A stretch of 64,000 bases of DNA from Glycera tridactyla (GCA_965644265.1 OZ286461.1:95666001-95730000); one strand, 5' to 3'. Positions 3,701-49,400 are shown, numbered from the stretch's first letter. Translations and numbers: made by a program. Notes: generated by a model not told the origin, from the sequence alone.

Positions 3701-3800
3701 CTTTGAAGAGGATACCTCATCATTCAATGCATTGCAAATCTGCCACCATTATTGGCAAATATTTTTATGTGAGACAGATGAGATATGACGGCGCCACTCA

Positions 3801-3852
3801 ATGTGAAACCAGCGTGAAATTGACATATTATGCATTCTCTGGTGAAATTTAC
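3801..3852. repeat. Dispersed repeat fragment; second copy at about 49120-49170
   Basis: tgaaaccagcgtgaaattga.atatt..gcat....ggtgaaat.taca at both sites. Confidence 0.55.
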
Positions 3853-4244
3853 AAGGGGCCCTGGTTGAGATTAGATATTTAGTACTTGAAGATGTCAACA
3901 AAACTTGTTACTGAGTCTCATTTCAGTCCAACGAACATATGCTATGCTCGAGCGAAAAACGTACCCGCCACGATCTAATATGCTAGACTTTAGTGATGTA
4001 GTCATTCTGAGCTCCACACTTTTTTCTCTTGTTCATTGAGCAGCAAGATCAATTCATGGGGGAATCAGACATGACGAGTTTGTTTACAGCATTCACTTGA
4101 TGTGGCCTCTCAATTTGAAAATCAGTGATACAATATAAAATCTAAGCTATGTCTCAGATCATAAGGCAAGTCTTTTCCAAGAAAAAATATTGTTAAATAA
4201 TAGGTTAGAAATCAAATACTGATTAGCGTAACCAGAAGACTCAC

Positions 4245-4376
4245 CCTTATATTGGTGTTGGAGGCATCGAGGACGGACTGCAGAAGTGTGATTAGACCCG
4301 ACTGTGGATTTATGTAGAAGAATTCTGCAGCACTGCCATCTCCGGTGATACGATATTCAATCTCATTATTAGGAGC
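4245..4376 (-). CDS. Cadherin exon 49 (last found in window)
   Basis: APNNEIEYRITGDGSAAEFFYINPQSGLITLLQSVLDASNTNIR|gtgagt; no following exon found in 1-4244. Confidence 0.87.
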
Positions 4377-10178: not shown

Positions 10179-10230
<52 letters not shown>

Positions 10231-13200
10231 ACCAGCATTTTTTGTCAAATAATGGAGAAAAACAGCACTACTTCCACTGGAATTATATTCTCATGCATGT
10301 GGGTACATGAGAAAATACTTCCAGTATGTTCACTCCACATTTACTCGCTATAAATTCGAACCTACCTTTTCATCAGCATCTGTGGCCCGAACTTGTAGGA
10401 TTGATCGACCAATAGGCTGCAGCTCGAGAATATTTGCAGTATAGTCGCTTCGCTCAAACTGTGGTGCATTCAAGTTCCTCAACACGTTGACATTCAAAAT
10501 AGCAGTGCTTTGTTTTGCCGGATTCCCACCGTCTCTAACTTGGACACGCACCTGCAAAATTAGGACAGACAATCTTGACTGTGATGCAGTTACTGTTCGT
10601 TTCATAATTTTTGGGAGGGAAATCTTGAATGATACACATGAGAGTGAGACAATGAAACCCAAAGACAGGGTATGGAAATGAAACAATTATTTTGATTATT
10701 TACAAATGAATTCCCATTACATAACTTATCTGGAGCACACAGCATTCAAATTTTTTCATCCCAAAATGACACAAATGATTTCATCAAGTACTCAATGTAG
10801 ATCCCCTGAAACAATCTGCCAAATTAACAATATTACAAGAAATATAATATGAAGGTACACTCACCTGATAGTCAATCTCATCACCAGGGGCATTTCGCAG
10901 CTCATTTTTGATCAATATTTCACCGAGTTCATTGATCTTGAAATAATTAGTGGCGCTGTCATCACCGATTATCTGATAGAAGAGCTGATTGAAGGGCTCG
11001 GTCGTGTCTGCATCCCGCGCTTCTGCTGCGAAGATGCGCTCATCAATAGGTACAGTCTGTTCAATGGTGAGGTCTGCCGGGAGATTGGTGAAGCGCGGCT
11101 CATTCTGGTTCCGCTTTATGTTTATTATTATATTTGCTGGAGATGGTGATCTCTTTGGTGGATTCCCCATATCTACGGCCTCCACTCTTATCTGTAAAAG
11201 TGAATAAACAAAAACATGTGCAGTTATGAGGGAACATATGTATGGGTTTGAATGAATCAAACTTCTAGTTATTCCATCAACATTCAATATTTCAGCTACC
11301 TGTGACTTAAAATCTTCATGATTCACAGGTTCATAAAGTTCATATACTGGCATGAATGCATATATGCATGGGCTGATGAATAAAGAAAAATGTACGAGGG
11401 GAATGATTGAATAATGGGCTAATTCCAAGATTCAACAATAATTCTTCTACTCTTACATCACTGAATAATGTTCTCTGAAATGTTAAGAAAATATGAAAAA
11501 GTATGTCTCATTGATATAAGTCAATCTTAATTCTGGTGTAAATATTTTTTCATTCTGATTGAACAAAACAAACTTAGTGGAAACAGATTCAAAGATCATG
11601 GTGGTACTATTCAATCCTGTCTTCATGCAATATGATACTGATCAAATGAAAATGGTGAAATGGTAAAATGATGTGATCTTGTGATCTCTAATGTAAGAAA
11701 ATAGCTAGGAGTTTCCCCATTACTTACCTCATGTCGCTGCGATCCATCTTCAAGTAATGACTTTTTCAATGTTATCAGTCCAGTTACTGGGTCAATCATG
11801 TAATACACATGCGACGGCGAGTCAGTCTTTATGGAATATCGAATCAAGTTGTTAGGTGCCTGTAATGAGATGAAGTATAATCTAAAGTGAAATCCAACAA
11901 ATCATCTGTCAGCATGGTGCTGGTAGACACAGAGAAATACAGATGGTAGCTTCTCATAGGTACATCCAGGGCCAAGATTGGCTGCACCATAACTGGCAAT
12001 TTGTCATTCCTATGCATGCATTGTGGAGCAAGCTGAACATAATCATGTAAAACTATTGTTTTCTCGATCAAAAAGGCAGACTCTTCTCCAATCTGAGAAA
12101 CAGATTAGGAATATGTCACTGACAAGTGCAAGTGAGGTCTGGTGGATGTCTACAGATTGTTGAGAATGATGTTTGGACAACTGAACCCAGTCCAAGGTTA
12201 TACCAGATTTCTCAAATGAGTTTTCTCAAGTGAGTTAGGGTATGCATACCTTATACCCCTGTAAACAGAGAAGTTCACAACACAATATTTCCAACATTTT
12301 ACATTTATTTTGCATTGCCCGTGATCATTCTATCCTACCCTGAAATCACAAAAATTATGCTGAAATCAACAATATGTCACAATTTTTCACCAACAAATTC
12401 ATATATTTGCAATATATAGACTGTGAAACAAGACTTTCATCCATGAAACCCATCATATTGTTATAAGATGAAACTGCACATGATTTCCTTACCACAATAT
12501 CCTGATCTGTGGCTGTAACGGTTACAATAGGATCTCCCAGAGGTAAGGTCTCGGTGACCTCCTGTTCATATCTCGTTGGCTCAAACCGAGGTTCATTCAA
12601 GTTGCGATTGACTGTGATGCTAACAGTAGCAGTGGCACTCTTTGGCGGGGTACCTCCATCTATGGCAAGTACTTTCAACTGAAAACATTTCAATTTACAA
12701 TGAAAATTCTTTTCCCTGAATTCATGCGCATCTGGCCTCTTCATCAACTATATCCTGTTGGAAGCAGACTAGTATTCTGAAAGATCTCACAAATCAGAAG
12801 TGCAGGCTCAGACAATCTTTGTTCAGCATGTACAACTCAACTGACTGAGCAAAAGAAGCAATAATCAAGCATAAGCTGTAGGCAGCTAGATTTCAAAAAT
12901 TGTACACATAAATATCAATGCATACAATGTTATGGAATCTCAAATTCTTGTGTTGACAAATATGACAACTCGGTGAATGACAATTTTTTATACTACTCAT
13001 ACAAAATCGGTAAAACATTTGACAGGCATTTTCTTACACAGTATAACTGAGCACACTTTCTGGATCTTAAGTTTCAGCAAATTTCTGCTTACATTTTCCA
13101 ATTTTTTTCACTGGAAATGGGAGTCCCTGGTCATTTTTGGTGAACATGTCTATGTGCCGAACTGACCAACTTGCTGGTGTGCCAATGCACACTTTCACAA

Positions 13201-28200: not shown

Positions 28201-31200
28201 AGTCGGATCAGTCAGCAGGGACCTCTGTACCGACACATCCCCAGTTTCCTTGTCAACTTCGAAGAATCCAAGTGCTGTCTCATCCCCTGTTGCTTCAAAT
28301 ATGAAGTCATTATTTGGAGCCTGCAACAACAAAAAATCATACATTCAAGTATCTCATCCAAAAACCGTACAATCTTCGCACACTTTTCTCACAAACCTCA
28401 TTTTGCTCAATTCTACCTGCTCAAATGGCATTCATAAGTTCCATCCCTCTTTTTCCTCCTACCCCACATCCTCCAATCACTCTGACAAGTTAGTGAGATA
28501 TGTAATTTCCATTATCATTACACAAGAACAATGATTTATGATGCGAACTCATCCCATTCACCTCTGATTAAGAAAAGGGACCGGATGGTTCCCTGAAAGC
28601 TCCCATTATAAACTTTCAACTACACTGCAAGTACCGAGAATTATTCTTCATTATGATTTATGATAGTTTACATTTCTTCTTGTATAGTAAAATATCAACA
28701 CCCATGATACTTATGGAATATGTAAGTGAGAATTACACACCGCGGCATCTCTGTCATTTGCTGTGACTCTCATGAAAGGCACACCAAGAAACTGCGTCTC
28801 CTGTATCCTGACATTCATGTTCGTCTGTACCCATGTTGGCGCATAGAAGTTCCTCAGTACAGTCACATACACAATTGCAGTCGCACTTCGAGGTGGATTA
28901 CCATTATCAAATGCCACCACTCGCACCTGAAAACACATCATGTAGATGAAAATCAAATCAAAAATATTTCAATGATACTTATAGTTATAGTATTTAATCA
29001 ATACTACCTTATAGTATTATGTACTATGTGATATTCATAATTATCTACAAATTCATCTACAAAATCCTTCAAGAATTACCCAAAAACACACATAGCCCAC
29101 AATGACCAGGTTTATCAACAGGATGCAATCATTCATTAGGTAATATTTTTCAGAAATAGTGTAATGGGCAAAGCAATGCAAATTCATATGCATTGGGAAA
29201 CCAGTCAATCTTGCCTCTATAAATGAAGGCAATTTACTTGCAATATCAAGAGAGAGAATCTCATGGCATTATCAGAAATACTTCTACAACCAATCTTGAC
29301 AATCTTCTTGTCTCTCAAAAGGTTATCTGAAGACCCAATGTCCCCATCCCCCTCAGCCTATTCCTATGAATCACATATATTTCCCAATTAGCAGATTCAG
29401 CATATTACGTTCATTCAATAAAGAGCTAATCTGATTGATCTCATATTCTGGCTGGTTATTTATGATGCAGACTGATGAGCCTACAACGGATTCAATATGG
29501 TAAACTTCTTAGGATTGCATACCCTATAAAGTTCATTAGTATCCGATGTTAAAGATGTCACTGTTGTGATCTGTCCTGTTTCGTCGTTGATCCTGAAGTA
29601 TGTTGGTGCACTGTCATCTCCAATGATGCCATAGTTAACCATTCGGAAGTCCTCCTGCAAATGATATACAAGATGTATCACATACATGCACTTGGAATCT
29701 CCTTCTTGAAGCTACTTTTGAAGCAATGTATATCATTTGGAGTGTAACCTGCTTCAGACCACCTCTGTCTAAAGGACACTTGCATACAGAGACTAGCCTA
29801 ATGGATGACTGTAATAGAACTTTATCACAGTAAATGGCCTGTCCAGACACCACCTCCCTACAAAGACCACTTATTCATGCAGTCAGAGGTGGTCTTTTAG
29901 ATAGATTCAACTGTAAATAGCACTGCATCATCAAGAGGAATCCTTGCTCCGAGGGCAGCCACCTGCCCTAAGCAGCCACTTTTAAATTTAGCGCTGGAGG
30001 TTTTTACCACTGTAATTCACCTAGTCTAAGCAGCCACCTGTCCTAAGCAGCCACTTTTTGCCTTCCAGAAGGGTGGCTGCTTAGAATAGGTTCGATTTTA
30101 TACACTGCCACTGTATCTGCAATTTTGTGTGAACACATATAATTTGAAAATACAGTTGCAATGTCATTTGTTGAATCCATGATTAGGCAGCTAGAGCATC
30201 TGGAAGAAAGAGCATTGATCTTTGATTTGAAGTGAACTTACAGCAGTGTCTGAATCCTGTGCCTGTACGGTAATGACACTGAATCCATTGGGGGCATCCT
30301 GTCTGATGGAGGCATAGTATGAAGTGTTGAAGAAGATTGGAGCATTCTCATTCCGGACGACGTTTACAGTGACTGATGCTCGATTTGTGGCCTGCTTTGA
30401 TACTGGCAAGCCTCGATCTCTCGCAGAAATCACAGGCTGAAATAAAATATTCATGAAAAATTAGTTCTAACTCATGGCTGAATGTGATGTGATTTTTCAT
30501 GTTTTTTGTGATGCAGATAAAGAGAGGTGAACAGAACTGGTAGGTCAACTGTAAGATGAATAACTGTATTTCCCGACTATCACATCAAACCAGTATAGTG
30601 AATGATATGATATGATGATCCTTCGTTTACCTCATTGTAATGAAGTATTTACAAAATATGCACTAGCCCAGCTCTTCATGGCATTCATGAGAAATAAACC
30701 TAAAATCCTTGAAAAATAATCAATCAAAGGTTCAATGCTGAATCATGTTCATATCCCTAACATGTGACTTAATTGCAGCTATCTGATATCACGGCAAGGA
30801 TATCATATCAAAACAGTATCATGAATCTGAGAATTGATTCACCAATGGTTTCAAGGTGAATCACATTCCTATTCCAAACATGTAAGTTAATAAGTTTGAA
30901 CATCTGACACTTATAGACTCAAGGATGATTTTGAGTCCAAGAGAAGGTTACCTACCTGATAGCGAGTATTTCTGCTGGGATCAAGAGCCACTGATTTTTT
31001 CAGACTGAGATATCCTGTGTCCTCATCCACCATGAAGTATTCCATGGCCAATGCATCACCGGACATCGAATAAATAATCTGATTGTGTGGAGTCTGGAAG
31101 AGGAAAAATCACAAGACCGAGATGAGCAACAATTACCAACAGCAGGGCCTCCATTTGCTGATGACATAAACCTACATCCACTATCTTCTCATAGAATGAA

Positions 31201-34490: not shown

Positions 34491-37400
34491 CACACAAAGG
34501 AATGGCATCAAAATTATCTACCTGCCTGGTTAGCAGTTACATTTTCAGATCTACCTGCCTCTTCAGAATTCAGGATGCCTTCATTATGTGTTCATTAAAT
34601 TCATTATCATTTTCCACCTGTCCACTGAGCAGGTAGGTTTCAAAATAATTCTGTCAACCTTGGAAATCTACCTGCAAGGGCCAGTTGGGAGGCCATCTCA
34701 AGCAAACACATGGACCCCATCTGGTCACCCCAGGATTACCCCCTCATCAGGCAAGGGTGAACAGGAACTGTCTGTTGATGTTGTGGTATTATCCCAGTCA
34801 TCAGCCGGTAGGGGGTCATTAAGAGGGATTACTTTCTTTGACCCTGTAGAATGCCCCTCCCAACAAATGTTGTCTTTGAGTATAGTCACTGTTAGTTTAT
34901 TGACGAAATTACTGGCAATTACTGGCGCGCCCAGGGGGGCCCATGGAGCTATTTGTTAGTGCGCCCATATCATTATGTAAGACGCCAATGGCGCGATGGC
35001 GCTGCAAATAAACTTCACTGCATAATTATTCCCCAAAAACATTTTTCGAGTCATATTTCAGGCAATATATGCATTTTGAAGGACAGTAATGATGAGAGTG
35101 AATATTCAGATCTGATTTGAGTTGCAGAACTAGGGTAGACCCACCATCTGAGTTGTCATGCAATTACATGAACAAAGCATGACATTGGAGAAAAGAGATT
35201 GATGTGTGATGGTGTGGAGGTAGGATAAGCTCTTTCTCGGTGATACTATCTGATTTTGAACATCTTTCACAGTACCTAGTCAGGAATGAAAGTGATTCTG
35301 GCAGGCATTGAATAGCTTCTCTCTTTCACTTGGCATCATATCATGGTGTTTGATTCCTCTTGACTGACCACAACCACTTTTGTTACCCACATTAAACAGG
35401 ATATAGATCATGCCTTGCATGGAAGACATTTCTTTGAAGTTATCAGTAAACTCATAAGGGATCCATGACAAGCTGATCCCAATCTCGAGATTGACATTCG
35501 AATTCATTACTTTGAACTGCATGTGCCTAACATTGACAGGAGCAATGGCAAACAGTGAAAAGTGATAAATACTCACCATGACTGTGATGGCAATGGAAGC
35601 TGAGAACTGTGGATTATTCTGTCCATTGGCATCCCGGGTGGAGACTGTGACCTCATATTCTCTCTGACGTTCATAATCCAGAGGTTGGATTGTTGTCAGA
35701 CGACCTGACACCTCGTCTAATCGGAATCTACCCGTGTCACCTCGAGTTATCACATATGCAATTGATTTTGTCTGATCCATGTCCACAGCCTGAATACATG
35801 AAGGAAACCATTGAAATAAGAGCTAAAAAACATCTAAAACAAGATATACATGAGCAAGGATGTATTTGAGCTTGTGAAGGAGGTGCACATCTTAATATAT
35901 GCATGAGATCACATAAAGATAAATAGAGATTGATAAATATTCATGATCAGGGTCCTTGTTTTTATGACTTACTAGACAAATCAATGTGATCTAATTGATA
36001 TATAACAGTCAAACAATGATAAAGTGAAACCTGTAACAAGAAACCCCTGATGAGAGACCACCTCTTATGGAAGACCACATCTGCAGGGCTGCTTTCTCAT
36101 TTGACTCAGTCAAATATACATCCAATGAGAGACCACCTCTTTTGAGACCACTTTTTGGTGACATAGAGGGTCATAGGTTTCACTGTAATAACGGAATGAT
36201 AGAAGAGAAAATAGTGACAATATTGATGACAGTACTAGTTCAATGGACAAGGGATGAGAAATGGAAGCCCACCTCAACCGTTGTGATGAGGTAGCCCTGT
36301 TCATTCTCAGGTACATAAGCTGTATAGAGGTTCTCTGGGAAGATGGGAATCATGTCCTCCATGTCTTCAACATTGATGGTAACCTTCAGCACACTTTCTC
36401 GTCTGTCTACTGCGCTGTCGTAGGCAGTCACAAGCAGGATGTGCTGGCTGGACGTCTCATAATCCAGTGGGGCCGATGTTCGGATCTGACCAGACTCAGC
36501 ATCGATGACAAAGAAACTGAAACATCAAGATGAATGTATGATTCTCCGGTTCTTATGTCAGCTGTATTAAGCTCAGTCAGGGATCAACTTCAATGGTCTG
36601 ACAATTTTCAAAATAAAATGCAGGTCAAAAATGATCAAAAAACCTGAGCACTATTGACAAAACCAATGATAAGGACTACATTTTCATGGCGGGACCAGAT
36701 GGTATCCTAATAAACTCCCCGGTAAGAATTACCAAATGTGACTGAGGGTTTATCAAGCACAATGGGATGTTTTGACCTGACAATGAAAATGGATTAGTTT
36801 CCTCTTATCATATATGATAATCAATATAGTTTCCTCCACAAAGATCAGGACACCTGTCATCAAATTCGATTGCGTTGTGAAATTGGCAATTGAGAGAAAC
36901 GCAATATTCAAATCTCCAGGATAATGCACAATATTATAATATGAGATGAGATGAGATGAGATGAGAAACGTTTATTTATCCATTCACGGGTACATGGTCA
37001 TATATGTTAGGTATACATGATGTTCGGTGCAACCGTGACAGAAATACCAGAAGCGATCAGATGATTAAATACATTTCACAAGTAAACATCACTGTAGTAT
37101 CAACAATGTCTTAGGACGTTCCTTCAGTGAAACAGTTCGGTTTCTAACGTTCTACTCTGTAAAGCCAGAATTAATTTCTTGTAAAAATCAAATCAGGTTC
37201 TGCAACCAGTTTATGGACTCATTACAATCATAATAAAATACTTCTTGTTACTGCTCAAGTGTTGGTCAGGTACTATTTTTATGCTCATACACATGCACGT
37301 CCGATACACTTCTTGGTTCACTACTGGTTCCCTTGCTGAGTCACAAAGATCATCGATACCAAAATTTACCCTGCAACATAGATATAAGAGCAGAATTATC

Positions 37401-40400
37401 TAGAGCAGATCCACTCCCTTATATGGGCTTTGAACGTTTTTGGTTCAACGTTTTGTTTCAGTTTTAATTCTTGTGGCAGTGAATTCCACTGTTTTGGTCC
37501 AAAGTAGGAGAAGGATCTCTGGGCATTGCTCGACCTTCTTAGGGGCAATTCAAAATCTCCAGTGGCTGAACCCCTTGTTTCATGTGCGTGGGTGTCACAT
37601 AAAGGGATTAGAAGGTCATTGATATACGGTGGGCAGCGTCCCTTTATGCTTTTATACATAAAAGCGAAAAGGTGCAACTCTCTTTCTTCTGAGAGGCGCA
37701 GAAGATCTGTATCGATGTGAAGCTCATCGGTATGGGCCCAGCAATTTCTCATGAGAATGATTCGTAACGCCTTATTTTGAAGTAGTTGCAGTTGGTATGA
37801 ATCTCTTTGAGAAATCGAGAAGAATACTATGTCACAGTAAGAAAAAAGTGGCAATATCAGTGATCTATATAGTTTGAGTGCCGCTTTCTGTGTGATGAAT
37901 TCTCTGGCCTTAGAGAGCATAAATAGACGCTGGGAGATCTTCCCTGCAATATAATCAATATGTGTTGTGAAAGAGAGTAGTGGATCTAGTTTAACACCAA
38001 GATACTTAAACTGCTCCACTCTTTCTACTAACTGTCCTGCAATGCTGATCGGAGAGAACACTCTGGTTGACAGGGTATGTCTTGTCCCAAAGATCATCAA
38101 TTTCGTCTTTGAAACATTTAAGAACAGCTTATTTGTGTTCAACCATCTTTCAACAATATGAAGATCATTTTGTATCGTGTCTATCAACTCTGATGGATCA
38201 CTGCTACTATAATGTATGGCTGTATCATCAGCATATAAAGAGCTGTTGCATTCCTTCAAAATCTCCGTGATATCATTTATGTATATTATGAACAGTGGTG
38301 GTCCAAGGGTGGACCCCTGGGGAACGCCACAGGTAATCGTTTCAGGGTTGGAAGGCACACCATTTATTTGTGTACGTTGGGATCTGTGTGTTAGAAATGA
38401 CCTAAGCCACTCAAGCTCTGTACCCTTCACTCCAATTTTACATAATTTCCATAATAATCTCTCGTGGTTCACCGTATCAAACGCTTTCTTAAAATCTAAG
38501 AAAGCTATAGCGGTATTATTTCCAATATCCATCTGTTTAAGGATAGTATCAGTCAGGTGTATCAGAGCTGTTTCTGTGGAGAAAGATGGGCGAAAACCAG
38601 ATTGAGATTTGTTTAGAATATTGTTGACTGTAAGAAAATCATATAATTGCTCATGCACCATCTTTTCTACACATTTTGAGACGAAAGGTAAGATACTGAT
38701 AGGTCTGTAATTGGACGGATCTGATCTATCTCCTTCTTTGTGCAGAGGGGTTACCTGCGACGTTTTCCAGGATTGAGGAACAATACCAGATGTCAGAGAC
38801 AAACATATCATATCATGCAATAATGGTGATAATATATCAGATGCGTCCTGAAGAAATCTAGCATATATCCCCGGAAATCCAGTGGATTTACCAATTTTCA
38901 TATCCTTGAGAAATTTGACAATTTCATTTTGTTCAGGAAGTTCAAACTTGAAAGCACTGGTCGAGGTATGAAAAGCAGGTTCTTGTTCTAACAAATCGCC
39001 AGTGATCCTTGATGTCAATTTTTCCCCAATTTCAGTATTGAATTTGTTAAAGATATCAGCCATACCCTTTGGATCAGTGGTACCCTGAAGTTCCTGAATA
39101 TTGCTGCTCTTGTTTGAGCTTGAAAGCAGTTGCGAGAAAACTTTCCATAGTTTTTTTGAGTCTTTTTCATATTCATTCAATTTGTCGAGAAAAAAGCTTT
39201 TTTTCAGAAATTTTGCAGCATTGTTTTTCTGATTTCTCAAGGTATGGGCTCTAATGATGTCTTCTTCCAGACCAGATCTTCTTGATTTTTCTCACCCACC
39301 TTCGGTGGGTGAGAGGTGGGTGAGATAGGCTGATCTCATGACAGGTGGGTGAGATAAGGTTTTTTTAGGTAAGTTGTACATGATTGGCCATATCTGTGAA
39401 GGACTGAAATTCATAGCCAATGGGAATGCTTCTTACATTGATGAAAGTAGCCCATGACCAAATATGGAAAGTAGTTCCTTGACCATGTTCCCGGAACTAC
39501 TTACCAGACTTCAGATTCATGAATGAGAATTCAGTACTACAATGAAATACTATGAAATCTTGAAAGTAGTTCCGAACCCAATATCAGAAAGAGGCCTTGT
39601 AGTTCCAGTGCCAGAAAGAGGCTGTGCAGCAGATCTTTGTTTATCTTGGAGCTGTCAAGATGTTGCCTTTACTAAAAGTTGGCGAAAAAGTAAAGTACAA
39701 GGGTTGCTTGGCTGTTGTCGAGAAGATTGAATCACCCCTAGGATTTCGGGAGTTCACCATTAGACTTGAGAGTGGAATAGTACGCATCTGTGCAAGATAC
39801 CTGTTGGAAAAGTTGGAGTACTCAGATAATGACCAACCAGGAGTGGACTTGGATAGTGTTGCTGAGCCTTCATCAGAGGTGAGTGAAGTGGAAATGGACA
39901 GTGAGGATGACGAGTTGCTTGTGATAGCTGCTACACAAGCAGAGAGTGAACAAGTTGACATTCAAGTTGAATCGCCGGAGTCCAACACTGAAAGTACATC
40001 AAAATGTGATCAGCCACACAGATTTGTTGATATGACTGTGCCAGTAGACGATTTCATTGAGTCTAATCAAAATAAACAGACTGTTCGGAAGACGAGAGGT
40101 CACATCGAGCTTTTGAAGTCATACTTTCTCACAATAGGAGAATCGCGAGAAGTGGAAGACATACCCCCATTAGAGCTGAGAGACCTGCTTAGCAAATTCT
40201 TCTTATGTGTTCGTACCAAAAAAGGCGCCGAGTATGAGCCAGTCACCCTTAGAAGCATGCTTGGTTCGTTCAATCGCTATCTATGCCAGAAGGACTATTC
40301 TGAGTCGCTCATCGAGGGCAGTACCTTCAAGAAAATGAGGGAAGCCCTCAAAAGCAAACAGGACTTGAAAAAGCAGGGGAAGGGAAATGGGCCGATGCAG

Positions 40401-43400
40401 GCGGGTGAATTGACTGATGCGGAAATAGACCAACTCTATGAAAAGAAGCAGTTAGGGTGCCACAGTCCAACGAGCCTGCTAAATACCATGTGGTTTATGA
40501 TGTGTGTTCATTTTGGGAGGAGAGGAGGATGTGAGGAGCATCGGAACATCAGCTGGGGTGATGTCACCTTGAGTTACGACAGAGTGAAAAATAAGGAATG
40601 CCTCAAATTCCAGGAACGCACAAGTAAAACAAGGACTGGAGCCGACCCAAGGGATATGCTACGTGTGACTCCGACAGTTTGGGAACGTCCTGATGAACCA
40701 GATCGTTGCCCCGTACGTGCTTACAAACTGTATGCCAAGAAGAGGCCAGCCACATACTCCAATCCAACAGACCCCTTCTATATCGGTGTAAACACAGCAG
40801 ACAAGTGCCCTCCTTTGAACTCCCGGTGGTTTATATCGCAACCAGTAGGACGTCATAAGTTGGCATCCATTATGAAGAACATGGTTAAAGAAGCGGACAT
40901 GGAGAGCGACAAACGACTTACAAATCACTCTGCACGTAAATATTTGGTACAGAAGCTATCCGCAAGCAATGTTCCACCCAATTTAATCATGCAGGTTACT
41001 GGACACAAGAACGTTAACTCCCTGAACAACTACAGCAAGCTGACTGGCCATCAACATCACCAGATATCAAGCATCCTTGGCGACACACACAACAGTGAAG
41101 TAGCTCGTCCCCCACAACCTGGATGTTCCTCATGGATAGAACCTGGAAATAACCCGCCTAATGCATTGCATGGAAGCCACCATCATGCCGGGACAGGAAG
41201 CCACCATCATGTCGGGACTGGAAGCCAAGTATTGAATCACTTTGTCCCCCGCCCAGCATCAGCCCAGAATGATATGTTGCCACCGCAGAGTTTGGCACTT
41301 CCAACGAACCAAGTCATCTCGTCTTCACAAATGTGCCAGACCAGCACTGTGGCTGTTACTGACAGTCGAGGTGAGATGTCGAACTGTGACGGCTCAATGG
41401 GGAGTATGTTTCGCGGGTGTAACATACAGAAGGTTGTTGTAAATTACAACACGTACAACAACATGCCCCGTCAGTACAACCGGGTCAAGCGGCTGGTGTA
41501 CTCCGATTCATCGGAGTCCAGCCAAAGCCAGTAACTAGTAGCTGGACAATGTGTACATAGCTGTATATAGACGTGATTGCTGTACAGGAAACCTGACGCC
41601 ATGTTGATTCATAGCCCAAGAACCTAATCTGTCTGTCAATGATTTGCTGATTGATGAACACCAAGTAACTGTCCAAGCACTGTGCACGAAACTGGGATAA
41701 GGAGTGGAAACAATATTCAGGGAAGGACAACTTGTGGTGAGTATCAGTTAAATATCTATTCTGTTATCAGTTCGACAAGGTTATATTTATCATGTTTTTG
41801 CACTGTTTACTGTAACACCACAGCAACTCAATGGGCCCATTCGACTGGTACTTCACGAAAAATAGTTACTTCACGATCGTGAAGAAGTTACTGCCCGGAG
41901 AAAATCGGCCGTGGAGTAATGCTTCCAGTCGAATGCAAAAGTTAGTTCACGATTTTTCGTGAAGCACGAAACCGCCCAGTCGAATGGGCCCTATGCTTGA
42001 TTCTGTTTTTACCATAATCACCTATCACCCAGACAGCTCTAACCAATCATGTACAACCTCATTCAAGGAAATTTATCTCATCCACCAGGTATCAGGGTAT
42101 GAGATGAGAGAGAGAGGGGGGGGGGGGGGGGTAAACTTGGAGCCCTGGCTATCAGTTGTCTGAAGGGAATCAACTACAGTGAAACCTGTCTTAAGTGAAA
42201 AGTCACGGGACCAAATTTTTCTTTCACTTAAGACAGGATTTTGCTTAGCGCAGGACAATTATAGTGAGAAAAAAACAACCGGGCCGATTGTGGGGTATGT
42301 GCTTAAGACAGGATTTTGCCTAGCGCAGGTTTACTCTCGAGCAGGTTTCACTGTAGCTCAAAGTTATTCCTCCTCATTTTGCCAATTTTCCTAGGACTGG
42401 CCCTATTTGAATTGAATTGAATTGTGTGTGTGTGTGGGGGGGGGGCTATTTCAAGCCCTGGCTATAGGATCAGCTGGGTTGGTATTTCATCATGTTTTAA
42501 TGAAATCACCTTCAATAACCTGGTCATAACTTCTCAAACTGCATATCCAACGAAAGAAAACATCAAAATCTCGCTTCATATGAGCTAGCTCGAAGTGATT
42601 CCTCCTCATTTCGCCATTATACATATTTTTCGACTTTTAAAGCAGCATGAAGAAATTCGCGACCGCCATCTTGGTATTTCTACAATCGAATTATCAGACG
42701 ACGGAATTCGCCTCCAACAAAGAAATAGACTGGTTATCACCTCTCAAACTGCGTATATAACGAAAGAAAACATCGAAATCTCGGCCCACATGTAGTAACT
42801 AGAAGTGATTCCTCCTCATTTCGCCATTATACGTATTTTTCGACTTGTAAAGCAGCATGAAGAAATTCGCGACCGCCATCTTGGTATTTCTACAATCGAA
42901 TTATCAGACGACGGAATTCGCCTCCAACAAAGAAATAGACTGGTTATCACCTCTCAAACTGCGTATATAACGAAAGAAAACATCGAAATCTCGGCCCACG
43001 TGTAGTAACTAGAAGTGATTCCTCCTCATTTCGCCATTATACGTATTTTTCGACTTGTAAAGCAGCATGAAGAAATTAGCGACCGCCATCTTGGTATTTC
43101 TACAATCGAATTATCAGACGACGGAATTCGCCTCCAACAAAGAAATAGACTGGTTATCACCTCTCAAACTGCGTATATAACGAAAGAAAACATCGAAATC
43201 TCGGCCCGCGTGTAGTAACTAGAAGTGATTCCTCCTCATTTCGCCATTATATGTATTTTTCGACTTGTAAAGCAGCATGAAGAAACTCGCGATCGCCATC
43301 TTGGTATTTCTACAATCGAATCATATGATGACGGAATTCGCCTCCAACAAAGAAATAGACTGGTTATCACCTCTCAAACTGCGTATATAACGAAAGAAAA

Positions 43401-46400
43401 CATCGAAATCTCGGCCCACGTGAGCTAGCTCGAAGTGATTCCCCCTCATTTCGCCATTAAACGTATTTTTCTTCATGTAAAGCAACTCGGAGATGATTGC
43501 GATCGCCATTTTCGATGGAACTTCTTCATCGTTGACAAGCCCCGGAAATCGCGCGAATATGATGACAAAACGACCTGTCATCTCGAAATCTGCATGTAAA
43601 ACGAAAGATAAGAGCACGATCTCTCCAAATATTGGCCGGTTGGTGTCTTATATGCACCATTTTTCATGAAAAACGTGCGGTTTCCACCATGTCTACATGG
43701 AGAAATTACCAAGGTGATCCCTTTCGCCATCTTGGTAACTTCTTTTTCCGAGTTGACAAGCCACGGAAATCGCTCTCAAAATACGTTTTTAGTCACTGTC
43801 ACATGCCATACCCCATGTAAAACGAAAGATGATTACTACAACTGGAGTTAGAATTCACCATTTCTTCATATTTTCATTGAAAAACGTGTTTTTTCGCGAA
43901 TGTGAGCGTCTGCAAAACAATTTGAGGTCCCCATTCTGACTTGGCCGGGGGGTGGCGCGAAAAAGTAATCCGTCTCAAATATACGTTAACTGTTCGATAT
44001 TTTGCATTATTCCTAGTCATATTGTAATTTATGATCGTTTTCGTGACTTTTTGGCGACGAAAAAGCATATAAATGGCCCCAAAAGAGATGGTGAAATTTG
44101 GAACTACATTTTGAGCGCGTAGTGTCTTCACTACGGACCACGGCGACTACGCGGTTCCCATTGGGCTCCATGTAAAAGTCGGTAGGCGTAGTGATATGGT
44201 GAATTGATGGTGTTTTGATACATCAAATCCAGCATCAAAATGGCGGAGATTTCGGCGATCTCTGCTCGATTCAAGCAATAAAAGATCGTTTTTGACACTT
44301 GAGGTGGGTGAGAAAAAGAATCTCTACCGGTGCCCCGGGTGAGACAGGCCAGCCACCTTCGGAGCGGCATTTTTTTTGTCTCAGGCCTTGGCAAGCCTCG
44401 GCCTGAGACAAAAAATGCCGCACCTCGGGTGGCTGGCCTGTCTCACCCGGGGCACCGGTAGAGATCCTATATATCCTGCGCATCCTTAAAATCATGCATC
44501 AATGATATGTACTCATCCGTAAGCCATGGAACATTTTCTACTCTTACATGCATTACCTTGTATGGTGCAACTTCATCACATACATGAGTCAGAATTGACA
44601 ATAGTAAATCAAAATTCTCCTGTAGGTTTCCTGTTGCATGAAATAGAGTAGTCAACCTTGCTTGGAGTGTTGTTCTGAAGTGATCCTTGTCATAATGCTT
44701 GAACGTTCTGGCCTCAATGGTCTTTTTCACTTTACTTGTTTTTGCACATTTCCTTACAGTCATCACCATGTCATGATCACTAAGACCAGAAGAGATCACC
44801 ATTGAGGATAGATATAGATCATGTCTGCTAACCATGATAATATCAATAAGCGAGCTTTTGGTTAGAGATATTCTGGTAGGTCTTGTGATGAGTTGTCTAA
44901 GACATTGCGATTTCTCCAGGTTTTTCAATAATTTCCTGTTGGGATTATTAACCAGGTAGTCAATGTTAATATCCCCTAGTATATGATCTAGTGAATTCAG
45001 GAGGACCGAGATCTGCTGAAAACATTCAAATGGGTCTCCATCAGGAGGCCTATATACATTCAGTATATAAGTGTCTCTGGTCCCAGGCAATATTAATTTC
45101 AGACCCTGGCATTCCAGGTTGCATGTGCAGCATGACAGTTCTGGAAGAGATTGGAGGTTAAATTTTGATTTATAATAGCAGAGAAGTCCTCCACCTCTCT
45201 TTGGTGGCATTAAATTTCTATCTTGCCGATGTAAATTAAAGCCAGGTATTTCCAGTTGGAAATTCCTTATTTTTGATGTTAGCCAGGTTTCCGATATTGT
45301 TAAAATGTGTACATCATTTGAAGCAATAGAAAATTTCAACTGGTCAAGCTTTAGAACAATGCTGCATATATTCTGATGTGATATTCTAATTCCTCTGTGC
45401 TTTGGGAAATCGTTATGTTCATAGAAAAGACTATCTTCTGGTCCTGGGTTCATCTCCACATCCCCAGCAAGTAGAAGCAAATCGTGGTGTGTATTCATAG
45501 CACAAGCAGGTATCTGGGTGAGCATATCATTAGTGAACATTTGTATAGAATTGAGAAGATAAAGTTGCCATCAACATCTAAAAACCTGTACATGTCAGGT
45601 TAATTCATTTCAAGTACAATACATAAATATATAAACTCCATGAATGCCTTTCATTATATACATTTGAAAATCTGATAATTACTTGTCGAGTGCTTGGTTG
45701 GGCATGGTACAACAGCAGGTATTGAAGAAGCTCGATTATTCAAAGTGTCATATGATAAATATAGAGGGCTGTCAATGAGAAAACAACCAATTTTGTGGCC
45801 ATGGGAGCAAATTTCAGCTAGAAGGGCTCCTTTTTTCATATGGGCATGGCACAACAGCAGGTATTGAAGAAACTCGATTTTTCAAAAAGTCATATGATAA
45901 ATATAGAAGACTGTCAATGAGAAACCAACCAGTTTTGTGACCATGGTAGCAAGTTTCAACTAGAGAGGCTCCTTTATTTGTATGTTCCATTGAGGAAGGT
46001 AGAATTTGTGATAAGCTATGAGCTTTTTCCGGACTGCATCTCCATATATTGCAACTTATTAACCTGGAAAATAAAAGAACAAATGTCCTTAGCATGTCAT
46101 ATCTGTATTGGATATACCTTTTTTGTTTTCATGGTATTATACTGAGGAAAAAACTGCATTGATGACCTATTGTGTCATTTTTGAGGCATTAAAATGAGCT
46201 TCCATGTTTTGAACTGACTGTGATAAAGATTTCAACATTTGTTGCTGAGATGCGATTGGATCCGCTGGGCCCACTGGCATTATGTCTCTAGGTGGAGAGG
46301 TATTCACGATCGCCTGTAGATGTTCGAAGGATTTCACAGTAATCGGTTGTCCGCCTTTCTGGATTGCTACCTTGATCTCACCATCCTGAGACCATTGGCT

Positions 46401-49400
46401 TGCCAAAAGACCGGCCCTGCGATATTTACGCGCCTCAAACATCAACGATGCTCTCGCTGGTGTGAGAAATTCGCGAATGAAAATTTTCAGATCAAGTTTC
46501 GCTAGTTTCATTCTTGACTGAAAAATCAGTTGACGTATACTCAATCTGTTGAAGTTCACAAGTATTGGTCTAGTCTTATTTGGCTCAATCTTCCCCATTC
46601 TTCTTGCGAAATCGATGTCGTTATTAGTGACCATTACTTGGAGCGGCTGTTGGGCGAATCTAATAATACCCGAGGCTAGATCTTCGTTTAGTTCTTCTTT
46701 AATTCCATCAAATATGAGCATATTGCCTCTGTTCATCTGCTCACATGAGTCCATACGGAATTCCAGTTCACTGAGTCTCTTGTCTTGGATGACATTATTT
46801 GTAGATAGGTTTTCAACGCGTGAAGTCAGCACTGCCTGTGACTCTTCAAAAATGCCCTTAAGCATTTGTCTGACATTTTGGTCACTGAGCATGCGGATGT
46901 ATTGCTCAGTTGCTGGATCTTGAGGCTCGCCAGTTTGCTGCTGCATCATTGTTTCATTTATTGATGAGTGATTTTCTATGAAACTCCCACCGATGAATGA
47001 TTGGAAATCTGGTTCCAAATATCTGGCAGCAGGTGTGCTTTGAACAGGGGTGCTTATTGCTAGTTTTTTGAACTTGTCAGGTGAATTTGGATCCGATATC
47101 AGACTAGTGTTGAGTGCCTTTCTCTTTGTAGAAGCTGGTTCAGTATTAAACATATCCGGAACCCACGGCTGGAATCTTGATGCTCTCATGGATAGAGCAC
47201 CTTCCAATCATAAATAGGTATAGAATAATTCCCAACCCGACTTTCCAGTGTTTCACGGGTTTTACGGTTAGTATGGATGGCACTCGACAATCTCCTGTTG
47301 ACTTTGCAACTATTGTTTTAGCACACACACATTCTGAGCATGTTCATGCTCACAGATGTAAAAATTTCTGTTTCTTATCTGGACTTTCAATCATCTGAGA
47401 GTACGGGCTTTCCAGTGTTTCACCTTATTTGAGGCGTCGTAGGGAACAATCCGACTCGACAGTGTTTCACGGATTCACTTTCCCAATATTCAACCCGACT
47501 GGAGTGTGTTTCACGGGTCTAGATGCGAAGAACAACTCGAATTCGTTACAAACACGGACTTTCCAGTGTTTCACCGTGTATACAATCCGGTTGCCATGCT
47601 AGACAATGGTGTTTATTTACGTTGAAAGCGGTGACGTCATCAATAACTGATGCACAGAAAACCGGTCCTCGGCCAATCAGCGATCCCCTTATATATCTAC
47701 ATCAGGAGTTTCCGCATTCGGCCAATCAGAATGCTCGACGGCCTCTTCGTCCCCAAAAGTTGGTCACGTGGTCAGGAATTGGCCTTTCGATCACGATTTG
47801 GCTTGGTATGAATTAAATCGAATTATAGGCACATAAGTTCCATATCAAATTTTGGCGCGGAGCAGGATTGGAGGAATGACTATCAATAGGCTTGTCAGTG
47901 TTAATTCTGCGGGAGAGATGGTGGTATCAAGGATGTGATTTACGCTTTTGCGATACCATAAATTTCAATTGACTTCGTAGATACAATATTACATCCGGGT
48001 TGTTGTTTGCTTGGCTCAGCCAATCATATTGTTCCTTAGTCAGAATGTGGGTTAGAGGAAGCAGTGCAGCCAATCAGAGCACGAGACGGCCTGTTCGGTC
48101 TCAATTATGCAAATTAGACTGTTGCAGTAAAGAAGTGCTCTCCAAACTGCGGTAACCAGAGTGACACGTGTGAGGTCTGGCAGATCGTTTCGTGTGTATC
48201 CGCCAACAAGAAATAAACCTACCGCTGGGGATAGTTTAGTCCGATATATTTCCAGGTAATAGTCAATTGGATTTGGTTCTGACTGTATCATTATTCCGTT
48301 GACTGTTCCAAAGCACTCGACTCGTTATTATAACAAATTGAGAATCCCGTGAAATCCAACATCATTCGTCGCCATTTTCAAGACCTGCGGTAAAGCCTGT
48401 CAAATCAACTAATCTTCCGTTGTATTCGTATACTGCAAGCCAATCGTTGTATCCATTGTGTGCTATGATATCTAAACTACGTATGCCAGCATCCGATACA
48501 TTCCCTGACCTGCTCCCTCCGGGGGAAAGAGAGAAATCGGGGCAAAGCCCCGGAACCCCTTCTTTACTCCATGGCGCAGTAATCCAGCCTCAATATGCAT
48601 GGCTGCATCATCCTGACATGCCATCAATGATCAAAATTCACCAGACACATATCAACCTCAGGATTATTCTATTATCAAAAGTACAAATTGAAAGTAATCA
48701 ATGAGATAGGTTTGCAAGGCTCACTGACCTGTTATCTGGTACTGCATATAGTACATGTCCGTTGTCTCCTTGATCAACATCTGTGGCCTGAAATAAAGTG
48801 AGTATGTGATGGGAGTTATATTTGACTCACACATATAGCAGACTCATGCTCTTGAACTCTGAGAGGTGGAATACTTTGTCAAATCGAAACATGGTGAGTA
48901 CATTCCCCAAACTGTTCCACCATTTCCCAACAGATTTCAGTTTTGATGTCTCATTTTTTTTTGTATAACCTCTGGTGATCATTGGGTCAGGTTCCAGATG
49001 CTTTGCTTGCCTTAGAAGTGGACGTGCTCTCATTTCATTGCATTTTGATGGCGAATTAGCTCACATTATCAGCAAATCCTTGCATGTGAAAGAGTGGAGA
49101 TTCGGCTGCCGCAATTGCCATGAAACCAGCGTGAAATTGATATATTTGGCATGCTAAGGTGAAATATACAAATGAATGTTTCCATGACAAAGTCTGTGAG
49201 TGAGTCTTGTTTCAATCTGATGCTAGATTGAAAAATGCATCAGTCNNNNNNNNNNNNNNNNNNNNNNNNNNNNNNNNNNNNNNNNNNNNNNNNNNNNNNN
49301 NNNNNNNNNNNNNNNNNNNNNNNNNNNNNNNNNNNNNNNNNNNNNNNNNNNNNNNNNNNNNNNNNNNNNNNNNNNNNNNNNNNNNNNNNNNNNNNNNNNN

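Follow-up and report, generated by a model that had tools for sequence, protein, structure and literature searches.

Marked by DUF3504 are CryptonA and its domesticated relatives, and the overlap region of classical tyrosine recombinases (YRs) is 6-8 bp. A Crypton is expected to encode a YR with the catalytic set R-K-H-R-H/W-Y, to leave as a circle and to integrate by site-specific recombination, and a HINE is expected to share its termini, at high identity, with an element of its genome that encodes Rep/Hel. For the Cryptons of animals, terminal repeats, direct or inverted, are not reported and the termini are undescribed (PMC3212892, PMC13465315), and work on fungal CryptonA in 2026 could not define the boundaries (PMC13465315). 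Terminal direct repeats of 4-6 bp are carried by fungal and algal Cryptons (PMC9977147). In autonomous HLE2 copies a fusion of Rep (HUH) and a Pif1-type helicase is encoded, an AP endonuclease being optional, and Rep/Hel is tied to Helitron2/Helentron ends by phylogeny and shared termini (PMC3627910, PMC4067079, PMC11417382). Some non-autonomous Helitron2 elements carry an intact foreign gene, Fanzor (PMC3627910), and no autonomous Helentron could be linked to the oyster HINEs by their authors (PMC7492417).

The window, the whole 64-kb stretch of DNA analysed, contains an insert of 5184 bp (39291-44474; 3 x 1728 nt) that interrupts the ORF2 of a LINE. The left flank (37396..39290, minus strand) is the RT part of ORF2 (ORF 37396-39240; RVT_1, 3e-41), whose frame runs on across the deletion, and the right flank (44475..45540, minus strand) is the endonuclease part (ORF 44467-45540), which joins in frame and whose match to Exo_endo_phos_2 (5e-4, 20.3 bits) is a weak hint under Pfam's 27.4-bit cut-off. 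Computational deletion of the insert brought LINE ORF2 in frame, with the minus strand reading PWLTDEYISLMHDFKDAQEKSRRSGLEEDIIRAHTLRN across the junction. Moving the deletion by -1 or +1 left the product unchanged, and moving it by -2 altered one residue, so the slide is confined to the TC common to both junctions (39290-39291 and 44474-44475). An earlier note on this DNA had claimed that deleting 39291-44474 rejoins LINE ORF2 in frame with a slide over TC only, and the shifted deletions bear this out. The insertion site is TTTT^TC, the LINE frame is exactly restored without target duplication, and the element entered the LINE as a single piece. The T-run at the left junction (39286..39290, plus strand) may be flank or element: no second copy of the interrupted LINE, usable as an empty site, lies within the 64-kb window, so either 0 or 3 of the five flanking T may be element-borne with the frame intact.

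The only ORF of more than 110 aa in 39291-44474 encodes a YR of 624 aa (39660..41534, plus strand; ATG at 39660, ORF opening at GTG 39624), which matched DUF3504 (PF12012; 2.5e-28) and Phage_integrase (7e-9). The PF12012 region was found in all 10 YR homologs, across which R320, K323, H423, R426, H449 and Y458 (R, K, H-x-x-R, H, Y) are invariant; judged by its sequence, the window YR is catalytically complete and of the DUF3504 type. The structure model of the YR resembles Cre, its best structural match, over about 355 aa (TM 0.65-0.73), with both DNA-binding domains present. IntI (2a3v) is one structural match among many, and QRICH1 is the nearest solved chain by sequence. No Rep/Hel was found in the 64-kb window, where the sole unaccounted ORF of at least 200 aa is 10784-11428. 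The ORF and profile searches agree with the earlier claim that an intact YR is the only long ORF and that Rep/Hel is missing.

The 5' end of the insert carries an asymmetric terminal inverted repeat (ATIR) of 11 nt, TCTCACCCACC (39290..39300, plus strand), followed by three inverted copies (39304..39354; starting at 39304, 39315 and 39344), the first of which pairs with the terminus as a 5' hairpin (fold z = -6). A further inverted copy lies at 44303 and a plus-strand copy with one mismatch at 42076; matches to TCTCACCCACC in the window number 7, against 0.72 expected. The 3' ATIR, AGGTGGGTGAGAAAAA (44302..44317, plus strand), is complementary to 39286-39301 at 16 of 16 positions, including the TTTTT that had been given to the LINE in the earlier note, the T-run facing the A-run of the 3' repeat. 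It adjoins, on the upstream side, a 146-nt hairpin (44320..44465; dG -84.5 kcal/mol, z = -16) whose tip, GGCAAGCCTCG, is conserved and whose internal loops are of the TC/TC type; the 64 kb contain no other inverted repeat of such size. The element closes with an unpaired, AT-rich 3' tail of 9 nt, CCTATATAT (44466..44474), as read from the sequence and the junction analysis. Motif search and folds are in line with the description given before, of a 5' end that folds on itself and recurs inverted at 44303, followed by a large hairpin.

The element is like CryptonA (Kojima and Jurka 2011, PMC3212892) in its lone, catalytically complete YR gene with DUF3504 and in the lack of a reverse transcriptase, a DDE transposase and a target duplication; non-autonomous derivatives are also known for CryptonA. 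It is unlike CryptonA in its covarying, asymmetric inverted repeats of 9-16 nt and its conserved hairpin of about 150 nt, and its junctions have 2-4 nt in common, whereas fungal and algal Cryptons carry 4-6-bp direct repeats (PMC9977147). The elaborate ends depart from the published description of Cryptons, not from their enzyme-based definition.

The ends had been called Helitron2/Helentron-like, which fits the published definitions (PMC3627910, PMC4067079, PMC11417382). As in Helitron2/Helentron and HINE/DINE-1 elements, the 5' repeat is 0-4 nt away from the terminus and forms a 5' hairpin (here 39290-39314), the 3' repeat adjoins, upstream, a 3' stem-loop with only a few nt between it and the element end, a T-run marks the boundary, insertion occurs after T(TTT) and before T/C without duplication, and both a microsatellite and a central tandem array occur. 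Unlike those elements, no copy seen contains Rep/Hel, the YR being the sole enzyme; the hairpin measures about 150 nt, against published palindromes of 5-10 bp; the distance from the 3' repeat to the element end is 160-175 nt instead of 20-60 nt; and the hairpin tip and TC/TC bubbles are kept across families.

New here is that this layout of ends and YR recurs around homologous YR genes in several lineages. A T-run with the 5' repeat, the YR, the inverted repeat, a hairpin of about 150 nt and a TATAT-type tail were found around YR genes of 33-46% identity in Saccostrea echinata, Mytilus edulis and two ENA assemblies. The units measure 2.2-3.6 kb and contain no second ORF, and those of 2.2-2.7 kb contain the YR gene alone. 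The full layout was present in two 2.54-kb copies, 98% identical, from one assembly (L001 and L002), in the Saccostrea (L003) and Mytilus (L004) loci and in a further locus (L006); the Littorina saxatilis locus (L005) showed the hairpin only, and a sea-anemone YR homolog (L007) had no such hairpin. In these four other lineages (L001/L002, L003, L004 and L006), the 5' repeat on one side and the 3' repeat with its hairpin on the other enclose the YR directly and nothing else, and the orientation of the gene relative to the ends is identical in all related loci. None of the five autonomous-looking units contains Rep/Hel, and the YR gene is intronless in 4 of 5 lineages. The L001 and L002 YRs gave a dN/dS of 0.91, i.e. 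neutral divergence, so selection on the YR is read solely from conservation between lineages. Upstream of the window ORF, three copies of GGAACTACTT (39469..39573, plus strand; two inverted, one direct) are probably a promoter or 5'UTR element. An exact GGAACTACTT was found in the equivalent place 5' of the YR ORF in L001, L002 and L004, with one mismatch in L006 and one deletion in L003, and none was found in 245 kb of loci bearing non-autonomous copies.

The sequence of the terminal repeat varies by lineage, and its 5' and 3' copies covary. The exact inverted terminal match is 16 nt in the window copy and 14, 14, 11 and 9 nt in other elements; of 2000 shuffles, 0, 0, 0, 14 and 65, respectively, gave a match as long. 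Compensatory changes occurred at 48 of the 64 hairpin pairs across lineages, and the tip is invariant. Each hairpin has symmetric 2x2 loops (C-TC-G/C-TC-G bubbles), with CTCG in both arms on the strand of the gene, and YTCG occurs 3-6 times per hairpin against 0-1 times for its complement, a strand asymmetry. Such retention of mismatches is not expected of a plain duplex palindrome. The tails of the related elements read CTCTATAT, CTCTATTT, CCTATACATAT and ACTTATA. A T-run opens all related elements (L001/L002, L003, L004, L006 and the non-autonomous families); the insertion sites are TTCAT^TC for L001 and TTGT^TC for L002, and the left flanks of non-autonomous families A and B end in T. At most 2-4 nt are common to both junctions in the window copy, L001/L002 and the non-autonomous copies.

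A pattern scan identified about 25 true hairpins in the JGI samples Ga0224511 and Ga0224510, which are part of elements of about 0.8 and 1 kb whose terminal repeats match (families A and B); the pattern demanded the tip and bubble motifs, whose presence there is not independent evidence. In one JGI sample, such short copies of about 0.8-1 kb that lack both YR and Rep/Hel are common. By tblastn, none of the approximately 25 short copies contained a YR, nor was a large ORF found inside them; none had an adjoining Rep/Hel, and the few neighbouring ORFs scanned resemble host genes (HSP70, SH2, PAN). The YR-less copies are short, deletion-type derivatives of the YR element, not a separate element.

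The window copy is an enlarged, atypical version, possibly a composite. A 63-nt inverted repeat (39335..39397 with 42033-42095; 71% complementary, in two strong blocks) brackets its YR gene and has no counterpart in L001, L003 or L004. Three features lie in the right arm and the sequence beyond it (42033..42127, plus strand): TTTATCTCATCCACC (42072-42086), which resembles the 5' end and is the second such sequence on the plus strand; a complementary repeat of 7 nt; and a (GA)n(G)n microsatellite. Their layout is that of a HINE left module (PMC7492417). Inverted-repeat analysis revealed a MITE-like insert (41833..41991) bounded by 16-nt terminal inverted repeats, GGGCCCATTCGACTGG, and another (42174..42356) whose 15-nt terminal inverted repeats are perfect. 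A tandem array of 210-bp units follows (42520..43900, plus strand; 210 bp x 4.6 with 94% matches at 42520-43484 by TRF, then about two degenerate units). Compared with the published elements (PMC7492417), 42072-44474 shows all HINE modules: left (subTIR, complementary repeat and microsatellite), central (tandem repeats) and right (subTIR and palindrome). Because of the second 5'-like end, the microsatellite, the two MITE-like inserts and the tandem array, the 3' half may have arisen by fusion of a non-autonomous module.

Since the YR sits directly between the ends in four lineages, ends and YR as one unit are favoured, and on sequence grounds they are conserved together as a single unit rather than the product of a Crypton landing in an unrelated Helentron. 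Two readings had been offered in the earlier note, and the relatives favour a YR class with structured ends over a Helentron with a Crypton gene as cargo. The scenario named there as refuting, with the ends common without the YR and the YR in its own boundaries elsewhere, was not seen in the four other lineages. Two points call for adjustment: YR-less copies do exist, as deletion-type derivatives, and the window copy is atypical.

The insert is probably a copy of a DNA transposon family that is known to date from molluscs and encodes a single enzyme, a CryptonA-type (DUF3504) YR, which moves the unit. The anatomy with its conservation and covariation was observed, as were the intact catalytic residues and the YR-less derivatives; we infer in addition that the YR is the transposase of the unit and that its substrate is single-stranded or cruciform DNA. 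The YR would mobilise both the unit and its short non-autonomous derivatives, with the ends acting as folded DNA. At the 5' end, which consists of a T-run and a 9-16-nt repeat, the repeat can fold back on the nearby inverted copies, and the element enters after a T or T-run without target duplication, its first bases (TC here) recurring just past the 3' end. The two terminal repeats would pair, with the hairpin stacked beside them, bringing both junctions together. The mismatched bubbles and the hairpin tip may be features for protein recognition, by analogy with integron integrases on folded attC sites. These sites are bacterial, 60-140 nt long, and their single-strand recombination is proven. 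The attC/IntI system (2a3v) likewise combines a YR with an imperfect palindrome whose structure is kept while the sequence drifts, conserved mismatches that give strand specificity and little common sequence at the crossover; the likeness is pure analogy, and single-stranded DNA is here a putative substrate. Subterminal hairpins, insertion beside a short fixed sequence and no duplication are also found in IS200/IS605 elements such as IS608, and the pairing of the 3' repeat with the flanking T-run recalls the guide sequences at the foot of their hairpins. In IS608 the guides are 4 nt long and the transposase is a HUH Y1 enzyme, which is missing from the element here. Tentatively, and with the odds somewhat against it, animal CryptonA recombinases in general might act on folded, strand-specific hairpin ends that are convergent on Helitron2.

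A different reading, which we consider unlikely, is that the ends are true Helentron/Helitron2 ends served by Rep/Hel in trans, with the YR a long-kept passenger that might, for instance, resolve or integrate circles or might play no part in movement. We know of no bench test of Rep/Hel on Helitron2/Helentron ends. The end architecture agrees with that published for HLE2 in every feature (PMC3627910, PMC4067079, PMC11417382), Helitron2 non-autonomous elements with Fanzor provide a precedent (PMC3627910), and the second 5'-like end at 42072 with a single 3' end has a head-to-tail look that resembles rolling-circle terminator read-through. The 2-4 nt shared by the junctions, less than the 4-6 bp of fungal and algal Cryptons and far less than a 6-8-bp overlap, speak against movement by the YR, as do the neutral divergence of L001 and L002 and the lack of such a hairpin at the sea-anemone locus. 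However, Rep/Hel was found neither in the window, nor in the five autonomous units, nor beside the approximately 25 non-autonomous copies, and the oyster HINEs were likewise not linkable to autonomous Helentrons (PMC7492417). The hairpin of about 150 nt, with its invariant tip and TC/TC bubbles, accompanies the YR across lineages at 33-46% protein identity, and a passenger lineage would have to last that long without the enzyme that it requires.

It is very improbable that an ordinary Crypton, bounded by the 63-nt inverted repeats (39335-39397 and 42033-42095), is simply nested inside an unrelated non-autonomous Helentron. That repeat does bracket the YR gene in the window copy, and the 3' half alone resembles a complete HINE, but the repeat includes the terminal motif of the element and therefore derives from the same element, and in L001/L002, L003, L004 and L006 the YR lies between terminal repeat and hairpin without inner boundaries. 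That the YR belongs to the host, as an ordinary gene or a domesticated Crypton derivative such as QRICH1 or ZMYM, with unrelated repeats on its flanks, is scarcely credible: QRICH1 is the nearest solved relative by sequence and database names include 'KIAA1958 homolog', but the unit precisely interrupts a LINE ORF, is present in more than one copy, 98% identical, in another assembly, keeps every catalytic residue and is intronless in 4 of 5 lineages.

Movement by the YR itself is the reading that we prefer. Such an end structure was previously undescribed for animal Cryptons, and it raises the question of which enzyme moves these elements. If animal CryptonA recombinases do act on folded hairpin ends, eukaryotes would have their own counterpart of attC-type or single-strand recombination, and a YR instead of Rep/Hel would mobilise part of the mollusc elements annotated as 'Helitron-N', HINE or pearl, which are the main carriers of satellite-like arrays in molluscs.

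Deletion of positions 39291-44474 (5184 nt, a multiple of three) from the minus-strand LINE that contains them rejoined LINE ORF2 in frame, and the breakpoint could be slid only over the TC common to both junctions, which confirmed the insert boundaries proposed in an earlier note made from the sequence alone. The upstream part of ORF2 (44467-45540, minus strand) gave a weak, sub-threshold match to an endonuclease family, and the downstream part (37396-39240, minus strand) contains the reverse transcriptase. Upstream of ORF2, a 346-aa ORF without a Pfam match (46167-47207, minus strand) is presumably LINE ORF1. Neither the LINE junction nor the element recurs within the window, and the T-run at the junction can be counted either as flank or as element.

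The 5' terminus of the insert, TCTCACCCACC, is followed by three inverted copies of itself within the next 65 nt, the first of which pairs with the terminus to form a 5' hairpin. A further inverted copy lies at 44303, and 39286-39301 is complementary to 44302-44317 at 16 of 16 positions, T-run and A-run included. Two bases past this 3' repeat starts a 146-nt hairpin (44320-44465; dG -84.5 kcal/mol, z = -16), unmatched in size by any other inverted repeat of the 64 kb, and after it the element ends with the 9-nt tail CCTATATAT. The sole long ORF within the insert (39660-41534) encodes a tyrosine recombinase (YR) with intact catalytic residues, and no gene for the HUH Rep and helicase (Rep/Hel) of Helitron2/Helentron elements was found in the insert or the rest of the 64-kb window. 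The interior also contains a (GA)n(G)n microsatellite, a tandem array of 210-bp units and two MITE-like inserts, one of 159 bp (41833-41991) with 16-nt terminal inverted repeats GGGCCCATTCGACTGG and one of 183 bp (42174-42356) with 15-nt terminal inverted repeats CTACAGTGAAACCTG. The self-folding 5' end, its inverted recurrence, the large hairpin and the presence of a YR without Rep/Hel had all been reported in the earlier note, whose observations proved right on every point examined.

The YR ORF matched the DUF3504 (2.5e-28) and Phage_integrase (7e-9) profiles. Alignment with nine homologs showed that the catalytic residues R320, K323, H423-x-x-R426, H449 and Y458 were invariant and that a small N-terminal domain and a C-terminal F.GC.I...SDSD motif were also kept. 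The AlphaFold model was confident at residues 1-55 and about 125-475, and ~355 residues superposed on Cre-loxP complexes (TM 0.65-0.73), with weaker structural matches to Xer recombinases, integron integrase and Tn1549 integrase. The nearest solved relative by sequence was human QRICH1, which is Crypton-derived, and the best database homologs, 33-46% identical, came from molluscs or from assemblies such as ERZ25069853. Judged from its predicted protein, the window element is of the CryptonA type. In its disordered C-terminal part, the protein has a His-rich duplication, GSHHH.GTGSHHH.GTG, which stems from a 24-bp tandem repeat (41172-41227); it was considered as a hidden HUH motif and rejected because the repeat is missing from the homologs.

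We compared the DNA around six YR homologs for ends. Assembly ERZ25069853 contained two copies, 98% identical over 2.54 kb (L001:5834-8370 and L002:65-2611), both of which start with (T)TCTCCCAC, carry the inverse GTGGGAGAA at the foot of a ~160-nt hairpin and end with CTCTAT(A/T)T. The YR genes of these two copies have 22 differences with a dN/dS of 0.91, which is neutral decay since insertion and says nothing on selection. The Saccostrea echinata locus (L003) has its gene at 5001-6506, between TTTATCCTGCAACT at 4859 and an exact inverted copy at 6861 with a 149-nt hairpin after it, and in Mytilus edulis (L004), TTTATACTGCACTC at 4660 is matched by GATTGCAGTATAAA at 8082 and then a 158-nt hairpin. 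Scaffold L006 has TTTTCTCAGATACCT at 54 and AGGTATCTGAGAAA at 2604, followed by a rising hairpin arm at whose tip the contig ends. In Littorina saxatilis (L005), a 178-nt hairpin module occurs twice 3' of the YR gene, where the 930-bp stretch of the 3' hairpin module is duplicated in tandem (8203-10447), and a ~342-bp satellite-like array lies directly 5' of the gene (1693-4553); a 5' repeat was sought at this locus and none was found. At the locus of a sea-anemone homolog (L007), the only inverted match was AT-rich and 13 nt long, and a large hairpin was absent. At all positive loci the gene had the same orientation to the ends, and the unit was 2.2-3.6 kb with nothing else inside. Inverted matches of 16, 14, 14, 11 and 9 nt were equalled in 0, 0, 0, 14 and 65 of 2000 shuffles, respectively. 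The terminal repeats vary among lineages, and the 5' and 3' copies of one element covary. These comparisons indicate a conserved family of transposons whose coding capacity is of the Crypton type and whose ends are of the Helitron2 type.

In five lineages, a (CC)GGAACTACTT motif lies just 5' of the YR ORF or where it begins (window 39469-39573; L001:6011; L002:254; L004:4778; L006:243; L003:~4972), and two of the three copies in the window form an inverted pair 14 nt apart. The motif did not occur in 245 kb of loci holding non-autonomous copies, and it is probably a signal in the promoter or 5'UTR rather than a cis site used in transposition. Another upstream motif, CCGTAGCAGACGACT, is common to the Littorina locus and L006.

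Alignment of seven hairpins revealed compensatory change in 48 of the 64 consensus pairs and a nearly invariant tip, CTCG-GCAAGCC-TCG. Every hairpin folds with two or three symmetric 2x2 internal loops, both arms of which read C-TC-G on the gene-bearing strand, and YTCG occurs 3-6 times per hairpin versus 0-1 for its complement. Since the same mismatches are kept in bivalves and a gastropod, unlike in a palindrome that acts only as a duplex, the hairpin is likely to work as a folded strand or cruciform. A second exact match to the 11-nt tip motif GGCAAGCCTCG lies at 30405-30415 of the window (~0.03 expected by chance in 128 kb, both strands); it was rejected as another hairpin, as a large inverted repeat is absent there. 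Contigs L006, L019, L030, L038 and many more stop within ~40 nt of the hairpin tip. Such palindromes seem to break short-read assemblies, so that draft genomes may under-represent or truncate the elements.

JGI metagenome contigs were scanned for the tip flanked by two CTCG motifs, which returned more than 120 loci, ~25 of them genuine hairpins of the window type and nearly all of these from Ga0224511 and Ga0224510. None of the ~25 copies contained a YR or a large internal ORF, and the few ORFs found beside the hairpins and scanned were animal-like genes (HSP70, SH2 and PAN). Family A (~800 bp) has TTTATCCTACCAT at the 5' end, then ATGGTAGGATAAA, the hairpin and CTCTATRT; family B (~1 kb) has TTTTCTTGCATAT and then ATATGCAAGAAAAAG with the hairpin; and a third family, C, has a 3' repeat similar to that of the window. 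The tip and internal loops of these copies are not independent evidence, since the scan pattern demanded them; the independent evidence is that many short copies with matching terminal repeats exist. In the Mytilus edulis YR gene, an annotated 'intron' (L004:6083-6600) contains a 155-176-bp tandem repeat with ATATCCTGC-type motifs, similar to the Saccostrea family's terminal repeat, and with a fragment like the falling hairpin arm. This repeat may be a nested non-autonomous relative.

The window copy has twice the length of its relatives. Its YR gene lies between the arms of a 63-nt inverted repeat (71%; 39335-39397 and 42033-42095) that includes the terminal motif and occurs in no relative; the repeat may have arisen by inverted duplication or by fusion of two elements. 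As a consequence of this repeat, a second plus-strand 5'-end-like sequence, TTTATCTCATCCACC, is present at 42072-42086, and downstream of it follow a short complementary repeat, the microsatellite, the tandem array and the single 3' end. The 3' half has the complete layout of a HINE (non-autonomous Helentron). It could have arisen by internal rearrangement, or when a non-autonomous relative became joined to the 3' side of an autonomous copy that had lost its own 3' end. All 5184 bp entered the LINE as one piece.

The left flanks of all copies end in T or a T-run, and the bases past the 3' end tend to repeat the first bases of the element. These were TC in the window and L002, TCTC in L001, N-TC(T) in 16 of 19 family B copies and AT in 10 of 12 family A copies, whose 5' end is TTT-ATCC. 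Because the empty site in the LINE has a single TC, the TC repeat is not a target duplication. ATACTT flanks both sides of one copy, L037, and no other, and was taken as chance. One nick site could be reused at donor and target, as HUH enzymes do; alternatively, recombination could occur at a very short common core, as proposed for Cryptons, and the end of CryptonF-1_cRei is CACCG and its target CAYCG (PMC9977147). The junction pattern fits both. When the ends were read by eye for a symmetric loxP-like core at the inferred circle junction, no convincing inverted symmetry was seen around TC. Complementarity to the 3' repeat extends to the T-run that lies outside the 5' repeat and that is, at least in part, LINE sequence in the window; the 3' repeat might therefore help to select T-rich targets.

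Published definitions of Helitron2/Helentron ends include a hairpin-forming 5' repeat 0-2 nt from the end, a 3' repeat just 5' of a stem-loop and insertion between TTTT and T/C without duplication (PMC3627910), and Helentron-type elements have 12-15-bp subterminal repeats, a copy-variable T-run and central repeats (PMC4067079, PMC7492417, PMC11417382). The ends of the window element agree with these definitions point for point, and the earlier note had called them Helitron2-style, but the element departs from them in hairpin size, hairpin conservation and the lack of Rep/Hel. For animal Cryptons, published accounts report that no terminal repeats were found (PMC3212892), and a 2026 study of fungal DUF3504 elements was unable to define boundaries (PMC13465315). 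The authors who described oyster HINEs could not link them to any autonomous Helentron (PMC7492417). No description of a YR with such ends was found in the literature, a search that did not cover Repbase entries, and a full-text search for the end and hairpin motifs returned unrelated primer matches only. We know of no description of animal Crypton ends since 2011.

The earlier note had left two readings, a Helentron with a Crypton gene as cargo and a YR-mobilised class with structured ends. The ends and the YR stand as one unit, and we lean towards the YR as its transposase. The 3' structure and the gene have been kept together even where protein identity has fallen to 33-46%, the units are compact and complete, and short derivatives without the YR share the ends, the same logic by which HINEs are paired with Helentrons. 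Mobilisation of the ends by a trans-acting Rep/Hel, the YR being carried along as a passenger, appears less probable. In its favour, the ends belong to a class tied to Rep/Hel and the junction homology is minimal for a YR; against it, the passenger lineage would need to outlive many turnovers of the enzyme it required. The simple-nesting reading, in which a Crypton lies within an unrelated Helentron and for which the earlier note had looked to ends without the YR and a YR with its own boundaries elsewhere, is contradicted by the related loci, where the same ends surround the same YR gene, and the copies without the YR are short derivatives.

Without known ends, the mechanism, copy number and non-autonomous relatives of animal Cryptons were beyond study. 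This family supplies defined, testable ends and a compact natural unit of ~2.5 kb for excision and integration assays. To our knowledge, annotation tools and curators assign an element to the Helentron derivatives whenever it combines short asymmetric inverted repeats with a 3' stem-loop and T-T insertion. If the YR does drive some such elements, Helitron counts in mollusc genomes would need revision, as would the rolling-circle origin proposed for their dispersed satellite arrays. A bubble-bearing hairpin read by a Cre-like enzyme would represent a new kind of recombination site for eukaryotes.
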